A DNA stretch of 64,000 nucleotides from Neoechinorhynchus agilis. Lineage: Eukaryota > Animalia > Acanthocephala. Where the stretch lies: contig CM121341.1 of the NCBI GenBank assembly GCA_051530055.1, forward strand, positions 15,230,784-15,294,783, in the 5' to 3' direction. The notes under the pieces are model-generated. The model had not been told where the DNA came from. It saw only the letters and a list, made by a program, of their open reading frames with translations, and made no database searches. The stretch's first letter is position 1. Every line of letters starts with the position of its first letter. Both the position numbers and the translations under genes were made by a program. Shown here in pieces: positions 30,842-64,000 of the stretch.

Positions 30842-33085
30842 TTAGCGTCTTCGTATTAAACTGTTCATGTAAGCGAGTAGCGATCCCGGTTTCAAGGCCG
30901 CCACGTCGTCCGCTCTTGCTTTGTTTCTCAAGTTTAGGTCATTGGAAACCAACAGTGAAGTCTGTGTTTGTCTGTACAAATATTGATACTTTTTTTCGGT
31001 CAATCGAGCACAATCTAGAATGGATTCATCATTAATCCGAGAAAGCATTCGACTGTGTTTATGATCGTTGCAAATCTTTAAGTTTGATTTTTGTTTGTGA
31101 TCATAAATCCACTCCAGTGCGGCTTTGGCCTCACAATATGTTGGTTTTCCCGGTTTAGCGAGATTTTCAAGTTCACTTACGACTACGTTAGGAATCACGC
31201 ATTTGAACTCCATCAAACGCATTGCTTCCTCTACTTGGTACCGATCATATAGTACGGCGTTCGTGTCGATCACTGCGATCAATAATCGATAAACAGGTTC
31301 CGTATAACCGTCTTCAGTTGAATCAAACTTCAATTTTCTGATCATCCGTCCACAATGCGACTCTAGTAAATGTTGGTCAAAGTGCATACTGTCGCAAATA
31401 ACATTACAGACAGCCTTCGACCCCAGCAATGTTTGAATCTTAAAAGTTCCTTTCTCTTCGATAGAAAAGGTGTTCGATACCTCAAGAAGGTCACGAGTTA
31501 AAACCTTGTCCGTTTGCTCGATGTCAACACAAAGGTCAAGCATCACAGCAAATGCGGCCAATGAAAGCGAAGACCGGTTATTGACGGCTAGCGAGAGACA
31601 TGCCCGCATTACGGGTTCACAGAAGTCTGATAAAGCCATATATTGGTGAAATATATCACCTTTGCCTCTCATGGTTTTGCTCAGAATCGAAGCGATCATG
31701 AATATCGATTTTTCTAGCTCTTCGTTGTCGTCATGAGACTCCATCGCTTTCATCATGCAATCACTAAATGCGCGGGTCACATCAGCTGTAATCGCTACGG
31801 AGGATGTCTCGTGGCAGCTGTATAAATCCCTCAAGAAGATGTGAATCAATCCAATCAGTCCGCCTTGCGGCATAGGCTTTGCAATGTTTTCATCAAATTT
31901 CTTAAGACGGCATTGAATTTGCTGGCTTCGAAAATCAAGTATCGAAGGGATTCTCGATTAAATGGCGAGGAAATAGGAATTTTTACCGAATTTAAACTGT
32001 ACAGGAAAAAAGTTACGTTCAATAATAAGTATAAAATCAATTCTGAACATAAATATCGTTTCTTTTGATTATACGTCATCGGCGCTAATGGATTTTGAAT
32101 CCTTTTGACCCCAGAGATAGGGATCAGGGGCTCAAGTCCACTAGACCACCTCAAGACCTGCCAGTTTTTAGCTTAGGCAACTTTTTAAACTTAACGATGA
32201 TCGTATAAAAAATTCTATAATTGTAATTACTATTGTTTCAATTTCACCTAGCGATATTTTAATCATTATTGTTTCAATTTCACCTAGCGATATTTTAATC
32301 ATTATTGTTTCAATTTCACCTAAATTGAAACAATAAATTGTAATTACGATTATCGAGCATACCTTCGCGAAGAAGAATGATTCCTTCTGGATTCCTATAT
32401 AATTATCAGAGTCGGTTAAAGCTCCACTGTTTTGAATTGAGCAGGATAAAAATTCACCAACTTTTTTCTTCATAACTTTTCTTAGCTCATCGGAAATTTC
32501 GTTAGCAAGATCAATCATTTCTATAGACAATAAGGCAAAATATATTGAAGCTAAGAACGTAGGATTCCCCGGTTGCACCAGCAATAGTTTCGCTATTTTC
32601 TCGTATGCTAATGTACGCGGCGATGACGAGGTACTGTTCTCGGTGTTCAGATAACAATTGAGTATATCTCGCATTGAAATTGTCATATTTGAATCGACAG
32701 TTTGAATGGAGTACTTCAGACTTAAAAGATCTCCAATTTTAAGAAACAAATCCATTAGCACAATATCTTTGGTTTCATCCTCGTCTGAACAGGACGATAT
32801 TCTTTTTATGTAATCAAAGAAAAGTTCACTTCCTTGTTCTAGTACATGCTCAATCGTAACACGTAAAGTATGCTCTTCCACGAGATCCGATTTTGCACAT
32901 TCTTCGATTATAGGCTCATAAAAACTTCCCCATAGTCGACAGGAACTTCTAAAGACGTCTTTAATTGTATTATTGTTTCGCATCCGTTCAACGTGGCGGA
33001 GTCTCATTGCTTGACCTTGTTCAATTAATCGATCTACGCTTCTATAAGTATCTTTTTCGGCACGAAGACATTGAGTGATTTCCAT
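30842..33085 (-). CDS. SMG6: SMG6/EST1A-like protein: EST1/14-3-3-like region plus C-terminal PIN nuclease (3 coding exons, ~650 aa)
   Basis: LWGSFYEPII resembles the EST1-domain LWKNAFYQVI motif. PIN motifs VIDTN, VIPNVVVSELE, INDESILDCA and LVSNDLNLRNKA keep their acidic catalytic residues. GT-AG introns at 32,362-32,158 and a ~65-nt one near 31.95 kb join the three ORFs in frame. Confidence 0.75.
32219..32347. repeat. Intronic 36-bp tandem repeat (2.6 copies) plus short inverted tail, flanked by a 12-bp direct repeat
   Basis: Unit TATTGTTTCAATTTCACCTAGCGATATTTTAATCAT at 32,231 and 32,267, partial at 32,303, then inverted AATTGAAACAATAA. AATTGTAATTAC occurs at 32,219-32,230 and 32,336-32,347. 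Confidence 0.9.
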
Positions 33086-38840: not shown

Positions 38841-38959
38841 TCTCAGAGTGTTTAAAATTATTGTTTAGGTCTACACCCGGTAAATGATTATTTATTAAAG
38901 ACGTTTCGAATTCCAATCACATTCCCCGGTACCTCACATATCGACATTCTCAGAGTGTT
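38841..38959. mobile_element. ~95-bp internally inverted insertion with 12-bp target-site-like duplication, derived from the hammerhead-bearing repeat at 43.8 kb (Penelope-like fragment)
   Basis: TCTCAGAGTGTT occurs at 38,841-38,852 and 38,948-38,959. 38,856-38,910 is the reverse complement of 43,836-43,890. 38,909-38,948 matches 43,887-43,926 in direct orientation with 4 mismatches. Confidence 0.75.
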
Positions 38960-39883
38960 GTTTTAGAAAAAGCGACTTTTCTTTATAGTCATGATTATCA
39001 GAATAAATGACTCTGACAAAGAGCCTCAACAAGGCGCCAATCAAACTCAAGATAAAGTGCCAGCAATCAGAAATATAGAATTTGTCCTGAATGACAAGTC
39101 GTCAGATATGACAGTTGTTCACATGCAATGTGAATCGACCAACCCGAGAAAGTGTAGGTCACTCAGAATTTCCGGCCAAAAATCAATCCAGATTGTACCC
39201 ACTAAATAACCTTACATACCGGCATTTTCATCAAGCTTGTGCATGTTCCAAGCTACGATTTATCGATTGAAAGGGATTTCGGTAAACAATTAGAAAGCAT
39301 GTTTACTGTTTTCCTTAAGAGTCCATCGATTTCTCTCTCTAAGAGTACACCTAATGAAATATCATAGCTATAAGACGAAAGTTTATAGTTCTACTTGTAT
39401 TTTTTTCCGGCAAAGCGATTACATTGGCTGCGACGGAAAAGCATATGCGACGACCAATCAACATTTAATATAAAAGCAATTATGGACTAGTGTTAGGCCT
39501 TCGATGATCCAAATGGGCCTGTCATAAAGAGCTACTTTAAGAAAACAAGATAACAGCTTCCTATTGTGAGTATGCATTCTCCTTCTTCCTTTTGGATTGT
39601 ATATGGAATAAAGCAATGCCAAGGAACATGATATTATCCCTCTTTACGATGAGCACTGTTCTGCAAAAGCTGGATGTGGATGTGGCAATTGGCTGGCAGA
39701 CAAGCGGAATAGGCGTATAGTAGAATGGAGCACAAAACTATTCCTTCCCTTCGGCATTGTCGCAATATTATAAGCCGTTAGTACGCAAAAGACGCAGCAG
39801 GTAAAAAAAGATAATGTGGGTAGATAAGAGAAGCTTTTCCTTCCAGAGAATCGACTTTGTTCTCGCTTCTTTGCAGCTTACAA

Positions 39884-40692
39884 ATGAATCCAGCGGTCAC
39901 TATCTTTGTCGTTCTCCTGTTCATTAATGGAGAATTCAGCAAAAAAGAGTCTCATTCAAAAGATTCTAAAATAGGTGGGTATGTTTGGCTGTGCTATTTT
40001 TCCTTAAAAAATCGTTTATATACAGTTAGCACGAAAAAAGCCAGTGCATTCCTCGGTTTTAAGGATTGCATGAAAGCAATGAACTGTGGCCCGGCGTTAA
40101 AGAAAGAATGCGTTCATGAGTGTAAGAAAGGTTTGGTTTGCTTTTTAATCAAATAAGGTTCGCTCTATTTTCGTTAATAGGAAACACTAAAGAAGAAGTC
40201 GAAGAACATGTTGAGAAATTGAGGAAGGTTCAAAAATATGCAAAAGATGCGAAGGATGCCAAACGTATGAGCAAAAGGCAGGATACTGATCTCAGTGATA
40301 CTGATTCCGATACTGATTCAGACGATGATTCAACTAGTAGCAGTGAAAATGAAGGTTATTGTAGACTCGGCAATAAGTGCCAAGGACGTAAGATTATCCA
40401 TGTCTCAAACATTTAACTTGTGCTTTCGAGGCGTTTTAGTGCAAAAGGCAAATCGATTTTTATCGTACCGAGATTGTATGAAAAGAATGAATTGCGGAAA
40501 AGCAGTTAAAAATGAATGCAAAGAGGAATGTCTTGAAGGTAAAATAATAACCGTAAAAGCAAAGGCAAATTTGCATTTTTACTTGTTTTTGCATGTTGAT
40601 TCTTGGTTTTATTGACGTTTTGTAAAAATATAGGAACTATAAGAAATGCGGAAAATATGAACAATGTTGGAAAGGAAATTGTCCGATATTAG
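39884..40692 (+). CDS. Secreted precursor with two Cys4 modules and an Asp/Ser-rich spacer (5 exons)
   Basis: Signal-like MNPAVTIFVVLLFINGEFS. GT-AG introns at 39,975-40,025, 40,131-40,180, 40,388-40,430 and 40,539-40,633 are all phase 1 and give one open frame. Modules KASAFLGFKDCMKAMNCGPALKKECVHECKKG and KANRFLSYRDCMKRMNCGKAVKNECKEECLEG. Confidence 0.75.
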
Positions 40693-41269
40693 GATCTTTT
40701 TAATAATTTTAAAATGTACGAAAATATTTCCAATCGACTCGGATGTTCATTGTCCAAATTGAACGTGTTTTATATAGCTTAGACTTATACTGTAATATAA
40801 TTATACTAAAATCTTATATTTCAAACTATACGTTAGATTAATGATTTGCTATCTTAAAGTGTACTAAGGGAGGAATTACCGGTTCACTATTAAGTACTGA
40901 TATTTATTACTAGCAGAAATTGTCAGGCTCCACCACCCGGTGGCAGCGTTGACATTCATGACCGCTGATTATTGTTAGTGTTAATTGTCGTTTTGGAAAA
41001 TTCACTTCCGACGAGGAAAGATTTCCCAAAGGTGACTGCGAAGTTATTAACCAGCTAAATGTGAACGTATTACATCCTTCGGGAACTTTGAGTTATTCCT
41101 ACTGAAAATGGCATTAATAAGCAATTTAGCTTAGCAGCCATATATTAAAAAGAGAAAGTTTAACGGTATCATTTGTCCCATTTTTGTAGTTTGAATACAA
41201 GTGGCATCGGAAACATGAAAATTTAATCCCGGTGATAAAAATTTCTTGATAAAAATTATGTCTCATTAA

Positions 41270-41986
41270 TGTAGAGAAGTTTATTATTTACATTGTGGTG
41301 AATGCTTGTTGTCCCTGCTTTCATTCGGGGAAAGGAAACTTCTTCCGGCTGCCCGTCATTACGTGGAAGTCGCCACATACCTCCCCTCCAGTGTCGCCGC
41401 ACTAATCCGTTCCGTCCTGGAAACGGCCGGTCTCTCGAGTTGAACCTCGGTGTGATGACGGCGTGTTGCTAGCAGCTGGACCTGGTCAGGACGCTGACCA
41501 GGCCGGTCCCGTCGGGGAGGATCGTACTACCAGGTGCCGTCTTTGGTCCGTTGTTTGTGGGCTGCGCCGACTGCCAGTGCTGAGGCATCGGTGACATTGT
41601 CGAACGCTGCTTGGCTCGTTGGGTTGAGCAAGGAAGTCCGTATGTCACGACGCTGCGCTGGGCCAGATGTCGAGCAACCGAGTTGAACCTCGGTGCGATG
41701 ACGGCGTGTTGCTGGCAGCTGGGCCTGATCAGGACGCTGACCAGGCCGGTCTCGTTGGGTAAGGACAGCCGGGTATTGGAGGAGCAAGGCCTCGATGTTG
41801 TTGATGGGCCTGATCAGGACGCTGACCAGGCCGGTCTCGTCGGGGTCACCAATTTGGCGGCGTCACGTAAGAAGAAGATTAAGTTTATTATCTTTACATT
41901 GTGGTGAATGCTTGTTGTCCCTGCTTTCATTCGGGGAAAGGAAACTTCTTCCGGCTGCCCGTCATTACGTGGAAGTCGCCGCCACA
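41270..41986 (-). mobile_element. Non-autonomous miniature LTR retroelement (TRIM-like), ~717 bp
   Basis: Direct terminal repeats start TGTGGCG on the minus strand and carry AATAAA. PBS TGGTGACCCCGACG (41,851-41,838) is complementary to the tRNA-Trp 3' end. PPT GGAGGGGAGGTA (41,389-41,378) abuts the 3' LTR. GC-rich internal region with no pol. Confidence 0.8.
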
Positions 41987-42410
41987 AATCAAAGAGCTTT
42001 TTCTGTGATTATACGATTAAACAACTCCGCCCAGATTAAAATACCACGATAGTAAATAGAGGAACGTTCATTTTGATAGACATTAGCAATTTTCGATAAA
42101 TTACTTTGACATATCGATCTTGATTTAAATGCACAGTTCTCTTTTTGACTGGGAAACATTAAGAAGTCTAAATTGGCTTTTGTTTAAATTGTAATTTTAC
42201 ATTTGTTTGAAGATTGAACTACTCATTCAAGTATATGGCGGAAAATTTAAAGGAATTAATTAAATCCTATATTCCGGCACAATATCGTGATTTTATCAAG
42301 TTTGTTAATAAATTTTACACAACGTGTGTACTCTTTATCTCGTTCGTAAGACCGATAGCTTCTTATCGACTTATTAATTCTATCTGTTATCCGTTGGCCG
42401 CTCTCATTAG

Positions 42411-42616
42411 GTAACACCGAGGAGGAGGTAGAGGAGCATGGTTCGTTCTTGCGAAAGATTGACAAGTACATCGCAGAAGCTAAGAGACTGAAGAGCACTC
42501 TTCATCAAAAGGATTCGGATGATTCAACATCGTCCTCAGATTCTGACGATTCCACAGACGATACGGACAAGGACAGTACTGATAGCGATACTGACACGGA
42601 TTCCGATAAAAAGTAA
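42411..42616 (+). pseudogene. Exon paralogous to exon 3 of the 39.9-kb secreted precursor; gene or gene remnant
   Basis: After acceptor CTCTCATTAG it reads GNTEEEVEEHGSFLRKIDKYIAEAKRLKSTLHQKDSDDSTSSSDSDDSTDDTDKDSTDSDTDTDSDKK*, versus GNTKEEVEEHVEKLRKVQKYAKDAK...DTDSDTDSDDDSTSSS. Upstream exons could not be resolved. Confidence 0.6.
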
Positions 42617-43804
42617 AAAAAGAAAAAAGCATAGATTTAGCGCTGTATAAATCAAAAGGAAGCAAAATGAATCCCATGTTGAGCGTAGATTAAATTTGAG
42701 TACAAAATAAAAGTACTTTGAGCTTCATATTGATCATAGAATCCTATTAAAAATATCGCAAGAAAAAGCAATCAATGCCACTAACCTCTTCGTCCTTATT
42801 CTAACAGTTAACGAAAAAGTGTGAATAAGCAAGAACATTAGTTATTCTCTTTAGCTCTTCATATTGAGAACAACGGACAAAAGTATGTGAAACAAAACAT
42901 CAATTTCACCGCTCTCCTCTCGGTTGTAACTTTAACCCGACTGCCCAACAAAGTTGAATGCGTCAACTGTACTATACACGAAGTTCATAAAATATTTATT
43001 TTTTGGAATCTATGGGGCTGTTTTAAGCGGCAAGACTGAAGGAAAGTCGTCAAATCCATTAGAGATTGACATTTCGCTTAGGCGTCGTTGCTACTGATAT
43101 GCGCGGTGAAAGGTGCTATTATGAGTGCAAAGACCGTGCTGATAATTCAGAACGATCTATTTCAGGTCTATGAAACTTTTGTGGCGAAATCTGAGAAAAT
43201 AACTTAGAGTATTTGTTCACAGAACTAAAATCAGGTTAAGATGATGCGGATATTGTGGAGATATATTGAATACAATGTTAATCGTTGAAACAGTGTTTTC
43301 GCTTCAAGTGATGAAAATTTTCTTGTAATTTGGAGAGTTGCTCGAGCAACGATAAATCCCATTCTCGTTTTTATAATGTTTCGCCTATTCATTTGTTCTA
43401 TATTTCACACGATACTTTACCCCCCCCCCCGAATTATGTCAAGTCGGGCTACATAAAGTTTTTGGGTTGTCTCGAATGCAAGACGGAGTGGCGACTGACT
43501 TCTCCAAATAAAAAGGAAAGATATAACGAATCCAGTGAAGCATTCCTTAAATCGTTTGGATTCTTAGAACAATGTGGTAATGCTTAGGTTATCATAAGAT
43601 GCAATGCCAAGGATGGAATGTAATGGTCGGTATTCGGTTGCATGTGACGCTCCTTGACAACGACTGTCGCATTCCTTTAACGAGGACAACCCTGGATCTC
43701 AATCTTTCCAACCTGACCTTGAATTCGGCCGCTGATCAAAATTGATTTCGAGGGAGTTTGCACCCTTTTATGATCTTTTCCTTAGAGGTAAATCAGTTTG
43801 TTAA

Positions 43805-43854
43805 TTATTAAAAGACGCTGATGAACCCGACGAGGTTCGAAACGTCTTTAATAA
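43805..43854 (+). ncRNA. Hammerhead-ribozyme-like motif (minimal type I, imperfect)
   Basis: CTGATGA (43,818-24), hairpin AACC-CGACGA-GGTT, GAAAC-GTC (palindromic ACGT helix III), and TTATTAAA/TTTAATAA helix-I arms. The helix I and helix II registers are imperfect. Confidence 0.45.
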
Positions 43855-43957
43855 ATAATCATTTACCGGGTGTAGACCTAAACAATAATTCTAATTACAT
43901 TCCCCGGTACTTCACTTATAGACATTTCAATAGAAAAAGAAGTTTCTCATCATTATA

Positions 43958-44116
43958 TATGTATTTTTTGATGATAAGAAAAATAGAGATTGATTTATTA
44001 TTCTCAATATTTTATCCTTTTCGTCGGACTTCTTTAGGTTTCTTGTAAGTTTTCTATTAACGAAAAAGTGAGAATAATAAATCAATCTCTATTTTTCTTA
44101 TCACGAAAAATACATA
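43958..44116. repeat. Foldback: ~49-bp inverted arms around a ~62-nt spacer containing a decayed hammerhead core (minus strand)
   Basis: 43,958-44,006 TATGTATTTTTTGATGATAAGAAAAATAGAGATTGATTTATTATTCTCA is near-perfectly complementary to 44,069-44,116. Confidence 0.9.
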
Positions 44117-44397
44117 AGTAGATTTAGCAAACTCACTATAAATCCATAAGGAAAATCACGTGGGTGACACCGCCATTTTCCACGTGATTTGCACTTTATA
44201 AATGACATATAAACCACTCATTAGGGAAAATGTATAAAAGCTCACCATGAGATTTCTTTTTGAAGAAAGACGTCTTTTTCGTTTCTATACACTCGACACA
44301 TCTTTCTAATTACTGCTACTGTAAGTTGATGAAACGCGGGGTTTTCCTAAGATCACGTTAATTCGGCGATAAAATCAATACAACATTACCCAAAATT

Positions 44398-44561
44398 TCT
44401 TTTTTGGGTGACTCTTTATCGCTCCGAGAAAAATTAACATTTATTCCATTAATATTTCGAGACCTTAGTCCCTTCATCAGAATGTAGTAACAAGGTCTAG
44501 AAATATTAATGGAATAAATGTTAATTTTTATCGGAGCGATAAAGAGTCACCCAAAAAAGAA
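44398..44561. repeat. Foldback: ~69-bp inverted arms around a 25-nt loop
   Basis: 44,398-44,466 pairs with 44,492-44,561 with about 2 differences. Confidence 0.92.
44447..44484 (-). ncRNA. Minimal type I hammerhead ribozyme (Penelope-like, dimer-dependent helix III)
   Basis: Minus strand reads CAUU-CUGAUGA-A-GGGAC-UAAG-GUCUC-GAAA-UA-UU-AAUG: intact core, 5-bp helix II, palindromic AUAU helix III, AUU cleavage triplet and 4-bp helix I. Confidence 0.65.
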
Positions 44562-45110
44562 GTTAAATTCGCACCGAAAGTTATTCTCAACGAAATTACC
44601 CAAAATGCTGAGTAGTAAATTAACGCGACGGTCTGTCAAACAAGTCGTCCAATTTATCTGCCTTAAATCGCCATCGAGCCTAATAATACTTCCAAAAAGT
44701 AAAGAATCTGGTCGATCAATCATATTGATCCTAATGCAATCGTGATATTAGTACCGACATATCATTTCCTTTTGTTCTACTCGATTGCTAACGGCTGGCG
44801 TTGCGAGCATTCATATGAACGTTAGATGTTTGCCGACTTTCCTCCTCCTTCCCGGAGGATCGAGCGCCCATTATTTCCCGATAGGCACCCGGGGAATTCC
44901 TTTATTGTAGGAATAAAGCACATTGACCGCCCCTGTCCTCTGCAAGTCAAACTTGTAATTTGATATGGTAATTGGCACCCCTAAATGGTGGACTGAAAGC
45001 ACATTCCCACACGACATTCTCCCCTCCGGACACATTCGAAACGCTCCTCGCAACATTTGGTGACGCCTGTCTCCGTTCTCGACCTCTTTGTCCAACTTCT
45101 ATTCTAGACT

Positions 45111-47296: not shown

Positions 47297-47587
47297 TTGT
47301 TCGCACTTCGAGAATCCGTTAGTACAAAACGCCTCTTTAAAGATAGTAAGTAAAAATATGAGTAAGTCGCTCATCTGTTCACGCGTTGATGCTTCGCTGA
47401 ATCGAGACACGCTCTTTCGTTTCATAAAGATGTTTAATAAGGAAATCACTATTAAATTTGGCGTGTAAGAAAAATTCAATTTTTCATATTTGACCTCTTA
47501 ATTTTTACGTTATCAGCTTACAAATCTGAAAACGATTCACTTATATTTAATCAACGTCGTAAACACTTGCAAACAATGACTGATGAG

Positions 47588-48041
47588 GCGAGGTCACCTC
47601 GCGAAATATTTCCAATAAATCAAAATAAAATGTGCTATTACCGGGATTATTATCACCAAAATAATACTTATATTTAAAGCGCAGAACATTTCTTGTTAAT
47701 CGATAATCCGGTTAAAAAGTCAGAAATGTTTTGTCCGAATATTTTCTATGAAATGGTGAATCGAAACCTTAAAAACTTCATGGCAACTTCAAATTGCACG
47801 AAAATTTTAAATTAATACTTGCTTGGTTAGCTTTTGTCTCCAAATTCAAAAAAAGGATGACTTACTAAACGATTAAAACACTGTATCTTGAATAAGTGGT
47901 CTATTCGTTATTCTAACATGTATATATAAGAAGGAATAAAAAATCCGAGTTTAAGTTTTTGGTGAACATAATACCGGTCATAACTTATGTGATTTATTTG
48001 AGATATCTCGCGAGGTAACCTCGCGATTATGTTCACCAAAA
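47588..48041. mobile_element. MITE-like element with imperfect ~70-bp terminal inverted repeats ending in a self-palindrome
   Basis: GCGAGGTCACCTCGC(GAAATATTTCCAATAAATC...) at 47,588 and inverted counterpart ending CGCGAGGTAACCTCGCG at 48,009-48,025. Extra inverted pair TTTTGGTGAACATAAT / ATTATGTTCACCAAAA. Confidence 0.6.
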
Positions 48042-48979
48042 GTATACTTTGATTAACACGAAGCGCTAAAGGATTCAATAGTATTTCTTGAGCAAAACGG
48101 TACTCTTAAGACCAATTTTCCATACGAGCCATCACAAATAAAACGTGCAGTACCTCAAACTCTAGTCTTAAACAGCAACCAAACAACATCGATGCACCTA
48201 AAATTTCTAAGTTAATCGTTTAATTCCAAAATACAGTTTACTACTTTAAAAACGTTTATCCAAATCATTTAGATTTTGATTTGTTCGCACAACACCGTAA
48301 AAACTTTTATTCAGCAACTGCAACAAATTATCGAATATATCCGCAAATCGAGTGCATCCATCTAAAACTCCTTGCAAAAATTATGCAGTTCTGACTTTTT
48401 TGCGCATTTCTGTTTGCTCACAATGATTACACAATTATTTTTATTGAAAAATATCACTCTTGCCCTTAAATTTATCGACCATTTTTGGTGAAGATAAGTT
48501 AACAAATAAAAAATGCGATTACTATATGTTATTTCACTAAAAATTACTAAATTTCTTGAAAACACTTCGGAAGTAGTATTTCATTATACAAATTTATCCT
48601 TTTTGGCCTGTTTCAGATGACATAAAGTGTGCTTAGAGTCGTTCATTCGAAATAGCGACTATAAAAACAAAAATACGAACTCCCTAGGACCCAAATCCCG
48701 TAATTTTGTACAAAAATAACTTACTACTATATTATTTTCTAGTTTCAACATGCGCGACAGGATGAAAAATGAAATCGATCACTAAAAGGCGTATTTGTTT
48801 TGCTTTTCGAGTAAGCCAACATCGTAAGATAAAAATTCGGCCCTCATAAAAAGTGCTGCATCTTTTTTGAGAATATATAAAATCGAAAAGGATATACAGA
48901 TCGTATTCTCGCGGATTGTAAATACTTTGCTGAACGGATGGAGCATTCTTGTGGTTATTAAATATTTATACCTTCTCGT

Positions 48980-49219
48980 GGTAGTTATAACACCCATGAT
49001 TTAAATTAACTAATTTATTAATGACAGCAACAAATCTAGGAATTTAAATTCTGGGTGTTATAACTACCAAAAGAAAGTATATTTTCCCCCGAAATCCACG
49101 AAGTTATAACACCCATGATTTAAATTGACTAATTTATTAATGACGGCAATAGATCTAGGAATTTAAATCCTGGGTGTTATAACTACCAAAAGAAAGTATA
49201 TTTTCCCCAGAAATCCACG
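48980..49219. repeat. Tandem duplication of a 119-bp hairpin-forming unit
   Basis: Units start AGTTATAACACCCATGATTTAAATT at 48,983 and 49,102. Each contains the complementary arm AATTTAAAT(T/C)CTGGGTGTTATAACTACC. Confidence 0.9.
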
Positions 49220-58000: not shown

Positions 58001-59593
58001 TAATCAACGACAAACGAAATGTAGACTAGGAGAGTATTACAGAGCTCTAATATAGATACTTAAGTTTTAAAGTGCCTTTTAGCAGAGCTTTTAAAACATG
58101 TCCAATCGAAATAATTGAGATTAAAATAGCATTTTCTAATAAAAAACTGGTCTGGCAAATATATCATCTGTCCCGAGTTAATTTTTAATTTGATACAAAC
58201 CATTTGAATTTAACCTTATTAAATAGGAAAATAGCTTCTTGTAAAGTTCGCAAGTGTTTACTTCATCAGAACTCGAGGAAGAAGCTCTTGCATACATTTG
58301 TGGCACAGATATATTCTGATTCGCAATGCGACTTGATTTCCATATTCTTCGCCGATTCACCCCGAGGTAGTGAACGTGCTTGTCAAAGCGACATAATTTT
58401 GTAAGTCAGCACAGTTATGACAAAAGGCTATGTGCCAAATAGAATTTTAAGAAAATTCAGTTTATTCGCTTGAGAGTTGTAATATCCTGGTTTTAGAAGA
58501 AAACGATAATGAAACCACAAAGATTTTTATTTTTGTAGAATTGCGCTGTGAGATGATTTTCGCGGCAAAGACACCCGTATATTGAATGATGTCTTCACCG
58601 ACTTTTATGCCGTTTTGTTGTCAGTTTGTCTTGTCAAAAAGGATTCCAATTTAACTTACTTTAGATTTCTGTGTAGAGTTTCTCATCTTAAAAAGGAAAT
58701 GCTCGCTCCTCGCAAGTTTTCGTCTTGATTTATTTTTTGGTGACTTCGAACCTCGTCTGATTCATCATCAGTTCTAAAAAACGAGAAGTAAAATGGTACC
58801 CTTCTGTTTATATATCACACAACATTCTTTGGGTTCATACAAAAAATAGGCAGTTCGAAAGTGCGGATAAAAAAGTAGATTCATCCTCGGCAGTTTTCCC
58901 TTCTATCTTTTTTCACTTTGCAACGGTTTATGACTCCTATGGGTAAAATAAACAGTAACTAATTGCTCGACGATTAAGCGAATCCCAAACTCTATTGGGC
59001 AACTTAATGTCCTTTGTTCCTCTTTTGGGTGATAAGAGGAATGAACGCATAGAAGACTAAGGCACCTTGATTTGGAAGAGAATGAGCTGGAACACATTCC
59101 ATCCGAGATTGGCGAACTAAGTGAATTGTCGTGGCTTTCAATTGCATCAAACGCACTTTGCGAACTTAGTGATCATATTTGGTAATGGTGTTTTGCAAAC
59201 ACATTAATGGTCCTAAACTGTACCATATAGCTATCTTACCAATCTTCAGTACTTAAACGTGGGTGAAAATCGGATAATTTCCATTCCAAATGAAATTGGT
59301 AAGATTTTTCATTCAAATTTATCAAATGAACAATTGTGCATTAATTTAGGCCAGCTGGAAAAACTGGAGCAACTATATATCAATGATAATGAACTCTTGA
59401 GCGACCTTCCATTTACGCTTACACTTTGTCAAAATCTGCAAATTCTGGGACTTGAAAACTGCCCTTTAAGTGCTTTTCCGCTCGAGATAGTGGCCGGGGG
59501 ACCATCACTAATTGTGCAGGTACCCGAGATATTATAGGCATTCTATTTCATTCATTTATACAGTATTTAAAAATGAGAAGCATAAAACGCTGA
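55014..59593 (+). CDS. SHOC2: Leucine-rich repeat protein SHOC2/SUR-8, about 14 exons
   Basis: [63 protein letters not shown], and C-terminal [23 protein letters not shown]|YLKM all match the SHOC2 repeat series. Stop TGA at 59,591-93. Confidence 0.93.
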
Positions 59594-59719: not shown

Positions 59720-62700
59720 TGTGTGGCGAGTAACGTCAGAGGTCCACCAATCGATGTGCACGCATGGTGCATGGAGTACAACTAGAAAACAGAGCGCGTT
59801 GGTTTTTTGAGTTGAACTACATTGGTGCCCCCGACGCTTGTTAGCGAAGCAACAAGATATGGACAGTCAGGCATCGATTCAAGCGGTAAACATGAAATTG
59901 CCACCTTTTTGGATCGAACAATCCCGAGTGTGGTTCGTACAAGCTGAGGCTCAATTTGCACTGAGGAGCATTATGGCAGACGACGAAAAATTCTATTACG
60001 TCCTCGCAGCTCTGGATCAAAATACTGCCGGACGAGTAATAGATCTTCTGGAGACTCCGCCACAGCAAAAGAAGTACGATGCACTCAAAGACCGCTTACT
60101 CGATACATTTTCCTTGTCGGAATACACGCGTGCCAGGCGGATTCTACACATGGAGGAACTAGGGGACGCTCAACCATCAGAACTCATGGACAAGGTTTTA
60201 GGATACCTCGGGGCAGGTGTTCATGGAGCGGCTACCTGAGGATATGCGCTCGGTACTTGTTCACTCCAAGATTACGGATCCCCGTAAACTTGCACAAGCA
60301 GCCGACGAATTGTTCAGGGCAAAGCGGTTCACCGCGGGATCGATTAAACAAAACACCGATTTTATATTCCCTGTTGAACAAACCAAAAAGAAGCAAACGG
60401 ATATTTGCTTCTATCACCAACGGTACGGCAACCGCGCCAAGCGTTGCCGACCACCTTGTTCGATGGCACAAGACGCGTTTAAAAAAACTGCTAAGGAAAT
60501 AAACACGTTATTCTATGTTCACGACAGTGGGACAGGTCGACGATTTCTAGTGGACACCGGTGCCGAGGTGAGTGTTATGCCGGCGTCGATAGCTGATAAG
60601 TCAGTTAGTGCACAAAGCCGAACACTTACCGCGGCTAACGGCTCCTCAATCAAAACATTCGGAAGCCGGATGGTGGTGCTTCGTTTCGGTAAATGGACGA
60701 TTAAGTGGAAGTTTCTGATCGCAGCTGTGCGGCAACCGTTGCTGGGGGCTGATTTCCTTCGACACAGCGGACTGCTAGTCGATGCCCGTGGGTAAAAGTT
60801 GGTCGACCCATTAAACCACTGGGGAGAAGGCATTCCCTCATCACGAAAAGAAACCGAAGTAGCTCAAGTGAATATGACAAGTCCAAAAATTTCGATTTAC
60901 GCAAAGATGTTGAGTGCATTCCCGGGCATCAGTACTCACGATTTCTCGGGTACTGAGGTGAAGCATGGTGTGCGGCACCACATTCAAATGAATTGTGCTC
61001 CTATCCACGCACGGGCGCGACGCCTTACACCTGAGAAACTAGCCATCGCACAAGAGGAATTCGCCAGAATGGAATCGCTCGGAATCATTCGACGATCAAG
61101 CAGCCAGTGGGCGTCTCGGTTACACGTGGTTCCGAAATCAGACGGCACATGGAGGCCGTGCGGCGATTATCGACGATTAAACGAAATCACCATTCCTGAT
61201 AGATATCCGGTCCCTCACATCCACGATTTCTCAGCGCAGCTTTTCGGACGGGAGATATTCTCGAAGGTCGATTTGGTCCGAGGCTATCATCAAATCCCGG
61301 TCGCAGAGCACGACATACCTAAGACGGCAATCATAACGCCATTCGGTTTGTTCGAATTCCTCAGGATGCCTTTTGGCTTCTAAAATGCTGCACAAACCTT
61401 TCAACGGCTGATGGACGCAGTCTGCTCCGGTCTTGATTTCGCTTTCGTGTACCTGGATGACATCCTCATCGCCAGTTACAATCAGGCCGATCATTTACGC
61501 GACCTAAGAGTCCTATTCACTCGTCTAGCTGAACAGGGACTGGCCATCAACCTGCCAAAGTGCGTATTCGGCGTAAAGGCTCTCGACTTTATAGGTCATC
61601 GTGTCAGTGAAGAAGGAACCATCCCGATGCCCAGCAAGGTGGAAGCCATTCGAAGTTTTCCACGGCCAACGACAGTGAAGGCCCTTCAGGAGTTCGTGGG
61701 CATGGTAAATTTTTACCACTACTTTATGCCGGCGGCTTCCAAGTTGATGCATCCACTATACCTCGCGTTATCACAAAAAACCCCGAAAAAGATGTTTCCA
61801 TGGACTGAGGAAATGGATAAAGCTTTCAAAGTTACAAAAAACCACTGGCAGATGCCACTTTGCTTACCCACACCGCCAAAGACATCCCCATTGCAATCAC
61901 CACGGACGCTTCCGATTATGCTGTCGGTGCCATGTTGCAACAGAAAATATCTGACAGTTGGAGACCGCTAGCCTTTTCAGCCGTCAATTACGAAAACCCG
62001 AGCAAAAATACAGTGCCTTCGATCGAGAGCTGCAGCAAATTATCTTGCGATCCGACATTTCCGTTATGCTGTGGAAGAACGCTTTTTGACGGTTTTCACG
62101 GATCATCGACCACTCACTTTCGCAATAACACGAGTATCGGATCCATGGTCAGCACGGCAACAACGACACCTGAGCTATATTTCCGAGTATACCACAGACA
62201 TCCAGCACGTTAGCGGACGTAACAATAGCTTGGCCGATACACTCTCTAGAGCAATATTGAATAACGTCGCCGAGGGTATATCCTTTGAAGAGATGTCGCG
62301 AGCACAAAAAGATGACTCGGAAACACAGGCTTTACGTACAGCAAAGACTGGATTGCGTCTCCTTGATGTTCCAATTGGGGATGGTGAGATGACCATTTTG
62401 TGCGATATTTCAACAGGAAGGCAAAGGCCGTTAGTACCCGTTGCTTGGAGACGCCGCGTTTTTGATGCCGTCCACGAACCTCGAATCGGAGCTACGCGCA
62501 AGTTGGTGTCGAGCAAGTTCGTCTGGCAGGGTCTCGTCAAGGACGTGGGAAACTGGACGAAAATGTGTCTAGCCTGTCAAAAAGTGAAGATTCATCGACA
62601 CGTTAAAGCACCGCCGGAAATATTCGATGCACCTACAAACAGATTTGCACACATACACGTGGATCTCGTAGGCCCTCTCCCACCTTCTCAGGGATTCACA

Positions 62701-63600
62701 CACTTGTTGACGATAATAGATCGGTTCACGCGTTGGCCAGAAGCGATTTCACTTTCAAAAACCGACACACTTTCATGTGCGCGAGCTTTGGTCAGCAATT
62801 GGATTTCGCGATTCGGGGTTCCGACGGATATCACCTCAGATAGGGGAGCGCAATTCACCTCCAAAATATGGACCGACATGTCGACCCTATTTGGCACCAA
62901 ATTACACCACACGACAGCTTATCATCCACAGTCCAACGGTATGGTCGAAAGGATGCACCGGCACCTGAAAAACGTCCTTAAAAGCCCGTCTCAAATGTGC
63001 CAATTGGTATGACGAGCTACCGTGGGTCCTGCTGGGCACGAGGACATCGCCTAAATCCGATTTTGGGACGTCATCCGCTGAACAAGTCTACGGGAGCCCA
63101 ATTAGAGTTCCCAGCGATTTCGTTAGCCCTACACCGACATGAGCCAATCAAGGAAACCAACTCGAAAGTTTGCGCGATCGGATCCGTCCGTTAGTCCCCG
63201 TACCGACGTCACGACATGGAAATATCTCGACCTACGTCCCAAAAGCCCTTAAGATCGCACGCCATGTGTTCGTCAGGAGTGAGCAGATCGGAGGACCGCT
63301 GCTGCCAGCATACAGAGGACCCTACAGAGTAATCGAAGCAGGTGAAAAATATTTCACGATTGATTATAGAGGACGCAACGAAACGATTGCGATAGACAGG
63401 CTGAAACCCGCGCATTGTGACCCTTCCTCCACAGTCGAAGCCGACATACCACGCAAGCGAGGACGGCCACGGAAGACTTAGCGGAGCCTCTTGGGGGAGC
63501 TGTGTGGCGAGTACGTCAGAGGTCCACCAATCGATATGCACGCATGTTGCATGGAGTACAACTAGAAAACAGAGCCGTTGGTTTTTTGAGTTGAACTACA
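59720..63600 (+). mobile_element. Ty3/gypsy LTR retrotransposon, CsRn1-like clade, decayed (3,881 bp)
   Basis: LTRs at 59,720-59,821 and 63,501-63,600 (TG...CA; 2 substitutions and 2 indels). PBS TGGTGCCCCCGACG (tRNA-Trp-like), PPT TTGGGGGAGC, and flanks ACCA/ACCT (4-bp TSD with 1 mismatch). Confidence 0.97.
59859..63481 (+). pseudogene. Disrupted gag-pol: gag, aspartic protease, RT, RNase H, integrase
   Basis: Gag KLPPFW...WFVQAEAQF with CHCC motif CFYHQRYGNRAKRCRPPC; protease FLVDTGAEVS; RT VYLDDILI; RNase H TDASDYAVGAMLQQ; integrase HVDLVGPLP...IDRFTRWPEA and GPY. In-frame stops at 60,793-95 and 61,381-83, plus several frameshifts. Confidence 0.95.
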
Positions 63601-63699
63601 ACCTGATGTAGCGCTTTTAAACATTCTATATATTTTGAAGTCTGGCAAACCAGTAACTTTTGAGTATTTATCTATGTGTGGGCCTGTTTCACAGCTTAT

Positions 63700-63870
63700 A
63701 ATTTTCCTTTGGCACACAGCCCATCGATCGATGAAGATGAGATCGTCGGCATATAAAAAAGTTTAGATGTTTAAGGTCGTTTGGGAAAATATTAAAAAGA
63801 AGTGGTAACAGGACGGCGCTCGGAGGTACGCCCTTGGTGAAGGATAGTCTGATAGAGGAGGTAGTCACCC
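63700..63870 (-). mobile_element. Degenerate non-LTR retrotransposon reverse-transcriptase fragment
   Basis: GVPPSAVLLPLLFNIFPNDL (a GVPQGSVLSPLLFNIY.NDL variant), followed after a frameshift by YADDLIF (TATGCCGACGAT at 63,753-63,742). Confidence 0.7.
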
Positions 63871-64000
63871 AATCACCACCCCACCTCTCCCTCTCCTTAA
63901 TCTCTAACGAAATCACACCCATAAAAGATTTCTGGAGCAATCACAAACTCAACCTGAATTTCTCTAAATGCTTCGAAATAGTCCCTTCATTCTGCCGAAA

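Follow-up and report, generated by a model that had tools for sequence, protein, structure and literature searches.

The 64,000 nucleotides of the acanthocephalan Neoechinorhynchus agilis analysed here (assembly GCA_051530055.1, chromosome CM121341.1, positions 15,230,784 to 15,294,783; hereafter the window) contain several short inverted repeats that lie at or next to motifs resembling the hammerhead ribozyme. This raises the question of what kind of element leaves such foldbacks, and whether the ribozyme itself determines where they form. The original prediction, made from the sequence alone, described three inverted structures with an arm ending in a hammerhead core, and proposed that the cleaved RNA end of Penelope-like or retrozyme-like elements perhaps sets the point of template switching in what might be an undescribed system. 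It is very probable that the cluster consists of insertions of Penelope-like elements (PLEs) that are very short, being non-autonomous or heavily 5'-truncated, and that belong to at least three families of N. agilis. The cluster represents a known architecture with new family members and not an undescribed system, as the inverted 5'-truncated copy, the tail at one end and the hammerheads on opposite strands have already been published (PMC8557442, PMC4209133).

All three inverted repeats were present, essentially at the predicted positions. The segment 38852-38910 is 98% complementary to 43836-43894 over 59 nt; 43965-44012 pairs with 44063-44110 over 48 nt (92%) within an extended palindrome at 43958-44116 (72% over 173 nt); and 44394-44466 pairs with 44492-44564 over 73 nt (96%), leaving a loop of 25 nt. 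The first of them had been taken for one foldback and actually comprises two independent insertions that are separated by 4.9 kb and flank an annotated gene, so that the apparent foldback reflects the similarity of one half of a 95-bp insertion (E1c1) to a separate single copy (E1c2). A fourth structure of the same kind, absent from the original prediction, was found at 47950-48075 (x48) and is paired with 47580-47690. As for the hammerhead that was expected at each structure, it was found at two of the three; in the palindrome at 43958-44116 (fb2) there is no CUGANGA box, only CGAAAA boxes 10-20 nt upstream of AATAAATCA, a motif of the family.

The hammerheads of PLEs have been described as "minimal", in that they lack helix III, carry an additional nucleotide behind A9 and a G10.1-C11.1 pair, and combine a long helix II with a short helix I and a palindromic 15.2/16.2 (PMC4209133). 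A loose search pattern (CUGANGA-N6-30-GAAA) gave nine matches in the window against 4.4 expected, three of which have CUGAUGA followed by a hairpin. The bulge after A9, the G10.1-C11.1 pair and the palindromic 15.2/16.2, none of them used in this first search, agree with the published minimal hammerhead ribozyme (min-HHR). When a strict descriptor based on the published PLE features was run on the 34.8 kb of non-satellite sequence, two matches were obtained, at 44480-44451(-) and 47580-47610(+), against a mean of 0.009 in dinucleotide shuffles, in which two matches were reached in 0 of 1000. This is an enrichment of about 200-fold, and the motifs are thus commoner than in shuffled sequence. 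A covariance model trained only on PLE hammerheads from Anolis, Sitophilus and two metagenome contigs placed three window motifs at ranks 1-3 when its filters were off (16.5, 14.6 and 14.6 bits). The model also recovered a further copy of the E1 family elsewhere on the chromosome. With default filters, the model missed the motifs of the GAAAUAUU type, which became visible only with the filters off.

The individual motifs differ in their state of preservation. The bulged nucleotide is A in fb3, G in E4 and U both in the copy at 58771 and in a copy from a second N. agilis locus (L001), and the minimal helix III (A15.1, palindromic 15.2/16.2, U16.1, H17) takes the form GAAA-UA-UU twice and GAAA-CG-UC once. 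Helix I, for which about 4-5 bp would be expected, has 4 bp in fb3 (CAUU/AAUG) and just 2 bp in E4. In E1c2, the boxes are CUGAUGA...GAAACGUC and the arm begins at TTCGAAAC, within the 3' strand of helix II. Compared with the CUGAUGAUGAAYC of its siblings at 58771-42(-) and L001 12161-12112, this copy lacks one UGA repeat, which accounts for the missing bulge and the missing G10.1, and it is therefore a degenerate member of a proper min-HHR family; its helix I is out of register, with GACG pairing with CGUC. The proposal that several families are involved was confirmed, since one family of the GAAACGUC type and at least two of the GAAAUAUU type could be distinguished.

Some further observations concern these motifs. 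At L001 11624-11657, a decayed hammerhead (CUGAAAA G..GUGGA-UUUUG-UCCAC GAAA UA UU) has G8 changed to A, indicating that relics of GAAAUAUU-type PLEs are present elsewhere on the chromosome. Most N. agilis modules have an AAUAAA(U) string 3-10 nt past their predicted cleavage site (43850-43860, 44440-44450, 47612-47622, 47990-47998, 58726-58734 and 43991-44084). It is present in E1c1/E1c2, fb3, E4, x48, the 58.7-kb copy and both arms of fb2, and not in the two L001 copies. It resembles a polyadenylation signal and may be a conserved part of the module at which reverse transcription enters. A match of 44432-44526 to the plant family MIR1508 in Rfam (39.5 bits, gathering score 70), the only Rfam match in this region, was rejected as a generic hairpin resemblance.

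The arrangement of the insertions points to the same origin. Insertion of a PLE is expected to leave a target-site duplication that varies in sequence and measures about 10-15 bp. PLE insertions (Evgen'ev & Arkhipova 2005; Arkhipova 2006; Craig et al. 2021, PMC8557442; Frangieh et al. 2024, PMC11167929) are mostly 5'-truncated, often adjoin at their 5' end an inverted copy that is itself 5'-truncated, and carry a tail of 30-40 bp at one end only, with a hammerhead in the pseudo-long terminal repeat (pseudo-LTR) near the 3' end (PMC8557442). In vitro, the purified PLE protein nicks and extends both DNA strands, and reverse transcription starts at two internal sites, the tail being the interval between them (PMC11167929). 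The elements of the window (Table 1) resemble PLE insertions in several respects: the target-site duplication is about 12 bp long, the copies are arranged head to head, one and only one tail of about 30-35 nt is present, the hammerhead is 55-80 nt from the 3' end, and the insertions cluster in AT-rich DNA. They differ from published insertions in that both copies are only 10-100 nt long, so that the whole insertion is a hairpin of 95-200 bp, and in that they have no open reading frame (ORF) or partial-tandem pseudo-LTR; the families are new, and no autonomous partner was found. The derivation from PLEs that had been proposed is therefore supported by both the motif and the insertion signature.

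This signature is most complete in fb3, in which 198 nt lie between the duplications. The 3' end of the longer copy (...CACCCAAAAAAGAA) adjoins one duplication, and the 33-nt tail stands between the shorter copy and the other; the arm boundary at 44466 corresponds to the loop/3' strand of helix II. In E1c1, the 95 nt between the duplications comprise 58 nt inverted and 38 nt direct. The inverted half is identical to the reverse complement of 43836-43894 at 58 of 59 nt, and the direct part (38905-38947) is a direct repeat with 43887-43925 (88% identical) that abuts the duplication exactly. The inverted copy of x48 is 78% identical to 47588-47661 in inverted orientation. A direct piece of about 30 nt behind a short overlap, the same one-tail layout, is present in E1c1 and x48, and the tail is again confined to one copy, with a size of 33 nt in fb3 and about 31 nt in the E1 family. 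E1c2 ends about 15 nt upstream of CUGAUGA on its 5' side, where the homology with the L001 and 58.7-kb copies stops. Both arms of fb2 share AATAAATCA and TTATCAYSAAAA.AATAC.TATA with 47580-47690 and 47950-48075, and all five occurrences of AATAAATCA in the window fall within these elements.

Table 1. Positions of the insertions, hammerhead motifs and neighbouring features in the window
Feature	Position	Strand	Description
181-bp satellite array	1-29212		About 156 copies, 92% match; 120-, 301- and 363-bp variants and alternating subtypes
N. agilis protein ORF, 343 aa	30842-31873	(-)	
E1c1 left target-site duplication	38841-38852	.	TCTCAGAGTGTT; 12-mer found only at 38841 and 38948 in 64 kb
E1c1 inverted copy, no tail	38853-38910	(-)	From helix II 3' strand (TTCGAAACGUC...) to upstream start of reverse transcription (...AAUAAUUUUAA)
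E1c1 very short direct copy	38905-38947	(+)	About 8-nt overlap AATTCNAA plus about 31-nt tail, end ...ATCGACAT
E1c1 right target-site duplication	38948-38959	.	TCTCAGAGTGTT
Annotated gene, 235 aa	39884-42616	(+)	Between both arms of the first predicted structure
E1c2 single direct E1 copy	43800-43925	(+)	Hammerhead, 3' module and tail
E1c2 degenerate min-HHR	43818-43846	(+)	CUGAUGA-ACCCGACGAGGUUC-GAAA-CG-UC; covariance 14.6 bits, E = 0.08
fb2 head-to-head pair of E4-superfamily 3' modules	43952-44122	.	Palindrome; CGAAAA boxes near centre
fb3 left target-site duplication	44385-44396	.	ATTACCCAAAAT; 12-mer solely at 44385 and 44595 in the window
fb3 copy R, longer, no tail	44397-44495	(-)	About 100 nt, from 13 nt before C3; whole min-HHR
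fb3 complete PLE-type min-HHR	44451-44480	(-)	CUGAUGA A GGGAC-UAAG-GUCUC GAAA UA UU, cleavage mark, AAUG; descriptor match; covariance 14.6 bits
fb3 copy L, shorter	44490-44561	(+)	About 70 nt, 5'-truncated at helix II loop/3' strand (AAGGUCUAGAAAUAUU...); 96% identical to R
fb3 tail, on copy L only	44562-44594	(+)	33 nt
fb3 right target-site duplication	44595-44606	.	ATTACCCAAAAT
E4 single direct copy	47565-47690	(+)	Complete min-HHR at 47580-47610
E4 complete min-HHR	47580-47610	(+)	CUGAUGA G GCGAGG-UCA-CCUCGC GAAA UA UU; best covariance score, 16.5 bits, E = 0.02
x48 inverted copy, no tail	47950-48025	(-)	From helix II hairpin (CGCGAGGUUACCUCGCG) to ...CACCAAAAA; no CUGAUGA
x48 short direct copy	48026-48075	(+)	16-nt overlap (ATTATGTTCACCAAAA) plus tail-like continuation
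E1-family degenerate hammerhead	58742-58771	(-)	CUGAUGA U GAAUC-AGACGA-GGUUC GAAGUC

The same anatomy is found around a PLE that still has its coding region. In Sitophilus oryzae (L003), an intact PLE reverse transcriptase ORF with an HTH_animal domain, for which no GIY-YIG domain appears in the Pfam listing, is accompanied by a 12-nt target-site duplication ATATTTTGTGTT, an inverted truncated copy of 570 bp with a 30-nt tail, and a direct full-length copy without a tail; the distance from the hammerhead to the 3' end is 56 nt there and 54 nt in fb3. One metagenome locus (L014), which has a 34-nt tail and a 12-nt duplication, reproduces the fb3-like anatomy base by base, and head-to-head copies were also observed at loci from Tenebrio (L002), Sitophilus (L005) and Dendrolimus (L006). 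To obtain an independent sample, metagenome contigs were scanned for CTGATGATG-N10-24-CGAAACGT, which yielded 120 loci (L009-L128), mostly insect host DNA in termite-gut samples as judged by contig naming. Among 108 usable hammerhead copies, 57 head-to-head pairs were identified. In 63 copies, at least 700 nt were available on either side; of these, 30 had an inverted 3' module upstream (head-to-head) and none was tail-to-tail, with a direct partner upstream in one case and downstream in another. In all 17 pairs with an exact duplication of at least 10 nt, there was exactly one tail, of 26-38 nt. The suggestion that PLE 3' modules often become foldbacks thus holds for about half of the copies in this sample. 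The orientation bias (30 of 63 against 0) and the single tail per pair imply that head-to-head foldbacks are the normal state of short PLE 3' modules, created at insertion and not by later nesting.

In every pair that could be assigned unambiguously (fb3, E1c1, x48, L003, L014, L047 and L066), the tail is carried by the shorter copy; in two or three pairs with long spacers, the assignment to the left or right copy was ambiguous, because the reference regions are themselves palindromic. In one metagenome PLE family, many head-to-head pairs were seen in which both copies end 65-81 nt upstream of the hammerhead with a gap of at most 10 nt, which suggests either that the 5' end of the RNA is fixed, for instance by a transcription start, or that a ready-made foldback was amplified.

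Small size and long terminal inverted repeats are also features of miniature inverted-repeat transposable elements (MITEs), and it could be argued that the foldbacks derive from MITEs or other DNA transposons and carry hammerhead-like strings by chance. The hairpin of about 75 bp that fb3 would form if transcribed is indeed very stable by prediction (-114 kcal/mol, z = -16.9), and foldbacks free of hammerheads occur nearby at 48967-49219. In a MITE, the terminal inverted repeats would extend to both ends of the element, next to a short duplication whose length is typical of the family. What separates fb3 from a MITE is the 12-bp duplication combined with an asymmetric, unpaired 33-nt extension between its right arm and the duplication, as well as a ribozyme and a 3' end of retroelement type. 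The descriptor enrichment over shuffles, the excess of head-to-head over tail-to-tail pairs and the identical architecture around the intact Sitophilus element further speak against a DNA-transposon origin, which is extremely unlikely.

One-sided tails also bear on the idea of snap-back self-priming, by which a single cDNA would fold, for example via the palindromic helix II, and copy itself into an inverted duplicate. Helix II is the sole strong palindrome in the module, and the junction of fb3 would fit a microhomology of 2 nt (AA/TT). A copied arm, however, cannot gain a tail of 30-35 nt that is missing from its template arm, and such one-sided tails are found in fb3, L003, L014 and the 17 sampled pairs with exact duplications. 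Moreover, the tail sequence of L003 occurs in the source element directly 3' of the end of the shorter arm, and self-priming predicts a perfect palindrome centred on loop II, which neither fb3 nor x48 is. Snap-back priming is consequently very unlikely.

Inversions of a comparable form are known from another class of retroelements, the L1 "twin priming" inversions that Ostertag and Kazazian reportedly described in 2001. E1c1 and x48 resemble their products in having an inverted upstream segment and a direct 3' segment within one duplication, with an overlap of a few nucleotides at the junction. The PLE case differs in that the second start does not result from chance internal priming, two regular start sites spaced by about 30 nt being used, and in that the arrangement is the rule, at about 50% of short copies, whereas it is a minority outcome in L1.

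The relationship with retrozymes was considered as well. In metazoan non-LTR retrozymes, tandem hammerhead repeats propagate via circular RNA, and a derivation of retrozymes from PLE pseudo-LTRs, which is probable, has been argued (bioRxiv 10.64898/2026.07.22.740005). Both groups have a type-I hammerhead, and solo "monomers" are common among retrozymes. Retrozymes form head-to-tail tandem arrays and circular RNAs, whereas the elements of the window are solitary or head-to-head; no tandem hammerhead unit was found in the window, and neither was a direct tandem of modules of the kind that makes up a pseudo-LTR partial tandem. A single minimal hammerhead cannot form an active dimer in cis. The "retrozyme-like" label is not supported, and it is extremely unlikely that retrozymes produced this cluster.

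Dual PLE hammerheads on opposite strands, 100-700 bp apart, have been reported, and the motifs of the window agree with the PLE min-HHRs (Cervera & de la Pena 2014, PMC4209133) in their CUGANGA and GAAA boxes, the extra nucleotide A9/10.1, the G10.1-C11.1 pair, a helix II of 5-6 bp, the palindromic 15.2/16.2 and, most clearly in fb3, a short helix I. Unlike the published dual hammerheads, each foldback in the window keeps the predicted ribozyme on one arm only, and two of the four putative ribozymes are mutated.

Whether the ribozyme nevertheless dictates the junction is the most specific part of the question. The explanation originally offered is that the hammerhead self-cleaves and that the 5' end of the cleaved RNA is where reverse transcription runs off and switches template, so that foldbacks are anchored at the cleavage site. 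Several loci are in line with it: the full-length direct copy of L003 begins at most 2 nt from the predicted cleavage site, the short copy of L014 starts about 4-6 nt upstream of the site, and in four metagenome pairs the junction, at +27, +28, +28 or +30 from C3, precedes the estimated cleavage position by 2-8 nt. The copies in the window point the other way. Templated sequence continues upstream of the predicted cleavage site for 11 nt in E1c1, 14 nt in fb3 copy L and 24 nt in x48, and in all three resolvable cases the boundary of the shorter homology is located within helix II; the 74-nt inverted partner of a solitary Sitophilus hammerhead (L003 20780) likewise ends in helix II. Templated sequence 5' of the cut site implies an uncleaved template, and a cleaved RNA end therefore cannot have defined these copies. 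In vitro, hammerhead mutants did not affect PLE insertion, no RNA-seq reads starting at the cut site were found, and the PLE protein could still use as its template an RNA shortened to +20, a position in the 3' strand of helix II (PMC11167929). A switch at the cleaved end is thus very unlikely as the cause of the foldbacks. From L003, it could still be that ribozyme processing defines the 5' end of unit-length RNAs.

The wider sample also limits the claim that inverted-repeat ends coincide with the hammerhead core. Across the 57 metagenome pairs, boundaries were found between -221 and +81 relative to C3, with a cluster at -81 to -65, and most junctions are 20-120 nt upstream of the ribozyme. 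Only seven are inside it (+6, +6, +16, +27, +28, +28 and +30) and three lie beyond it, which rules out a general specificity of junctions for the core. The junctions are associated with the surroundings of the ribozyme rather than with its core, which follows from the small size of the retroposed unit, and the helix II pattern of the window may be specific to its families or an effect of the small sample. At the head-to-head junction of L003 (9741-9773), the 11-nt GGTATACGGTA is tandemly duplicated just before the direct copy.

Reconstructed from the observed sequences, duplications, tails, orientations and motif statistics, the order of events in a PLE insertion of this kind would be as follows. 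The copied unit would be the PLE 3' module, composed of a minimal type-I hammerhead and about 55-80 nt up to the start of reverse transcription. Both target strands would be nicked about 12 bp apart, and both 3'-OH ends would prime cDNA synthesis on PLE RNA, one cDNA from the upstream start site and without a tail, the other from a site about 30-35 nt further 3' and with a tail. Joined head to head, the two cDNAs would form an inverted repeat within the 12-bp duplication. With both cDNAs only 10-100 nt long, the result would be a small foldback centred at or next to the hammerhead, because the ribozyme is 55-80 nt from the 3' end of the element. The stop in helix II may be due to stalling at the G+C-rich hairpin, to the 5' edge of a protein-bound minimal template, or to chance (n = 3); it is not attributed to ribozyme cleavage.

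Several results weigh against this PLE interpretation. The Rfam hammerhead families (types I, II, III, HH9 and HH10) gave no match at the gathering threshold or at E <= 10, because these models need helix III, which minimal hammerheads do not have, and the E-values of the covariance model are only 0.02-0.08. No convincing target-site duplication was found for x48 and fb2. The two halves of E1c1 differ in their identity to E1c2 (inverted 58/59, direct 35/40; Fisher p = 0.04); different source RNAs may have served as templates for the two cDNAs, or the difference may be due to chance. The fb3 tail is presumed to be element-derived by analogy with L003, and its homology with the 33 nt downstream of E1c2 was not significant (p = 0.15). 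No PLE ORF, which would encode a telomerase-like reverse transcriptase and a GIY-YIG endonuclease, was detected in the window or in L001 by tblastn with the Poseidon_Ac protein, the copies being non-autonomous stubs. A search with the reverse transcriptase-endonuclease of Poseidon_Ac gave 4581 matches, with no N. agilis among the 120 matches listed, and an autonomous N. agilis PLE with these 3' modules was not found, so that the link with PLEs rests on the motif and the insertion signature.

A more far-reaching view would combine these findings. The PLE 3' module might be a self-sufficient mini-template, about half of whose copies are laid down as head-to-head hairpins through priming by the ribonucleoprotein on both strands, with helix II, or a protein bound there, as a preferred stop or switch in some lineages including N. 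agilis, and with the tail-bearing cDNA systematically shorter; such hairpins, 75-180 bp in length, would constitute an extensive and so far unrecognised genomic source of double-stranded RNA in PLE-rich invertebrates. Taken as a whole, this view is possible and rather doubtful.

With regard to the genomic setting, the product of the 343-aa ORF matches an N. agilis protein with 100% identity, and the location of its gene on chromosome CM121341.1 puts the window at 15230784-15294783. The satellite array that fills the first part of the window stops abruptly against genic DNA, and no hammerhead boxes were found in it; the remainder is AT-rich genic DNA with transposon debris. A PIN-domain gene has within its coding region a 36-bp tandem repeat of 2.9 copies (32220-32322), which gives rise to a repeated GEIETIMIKISL peptide, and a paralogue (56% identical) is located 7.4 Mb away on the same chromosome, in L001. 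This 21-kb locus was the only additional N. agilis sequence examined; when the Gypsy-like integrase of the window was used as a query for further N. agilis loci, no N. agilis paralogues were found. In an intron of the annotated 235-aa gene, a G+C-rich element of 707 bp (41274-41980) has terminal direct repeats of about 100 nt, 88 nt of them identical (41287-41374 and 41893-41980), as well as internal repeats of 243 and 85 nt, and could be a partial-tandem (pseudo-LTR-like), non-autonomous retroelement. The region 48967-49219 contains a 119-bp unit twice in tandem (94% identical), and each copy of it forms a foldback (AGTTATAACACCCATGATTTAAATT, 33 nt, and its reverse complement) without hammerhead boxes. 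Retroelement sequences occupy 59838-63481 and 63600-64000: the pol of a Gypsy-type LTR retrotransposon (protease, reverse transcriptase, RNase H and integrase), which is spread over several frames and has its best relatives, about 60% identical, in marine invertebrates, is followed at the end of the window by a reverse transcriptase fragment resembling that of long interspersed elements.

The genome paper of N. agilis makes no mention of transposable elements (PMC12690905), and the present analysis provides a first description of hammerhead-bearing PLE families in this species. Genomic copies from three unrelated hosts carry the signature expected from the two-strand nicking and extension and the two start sites observed in vitro. 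Caution is needed in interpreting such hairpins, which are by-products of insertion and neither a separate system nor evidence of cleavage-directed integration. Models of second-strand synthesis in PLEs would be constrained if either the stop in helix II or the placement of the tail on the shorter copy proved to hold across the genome.

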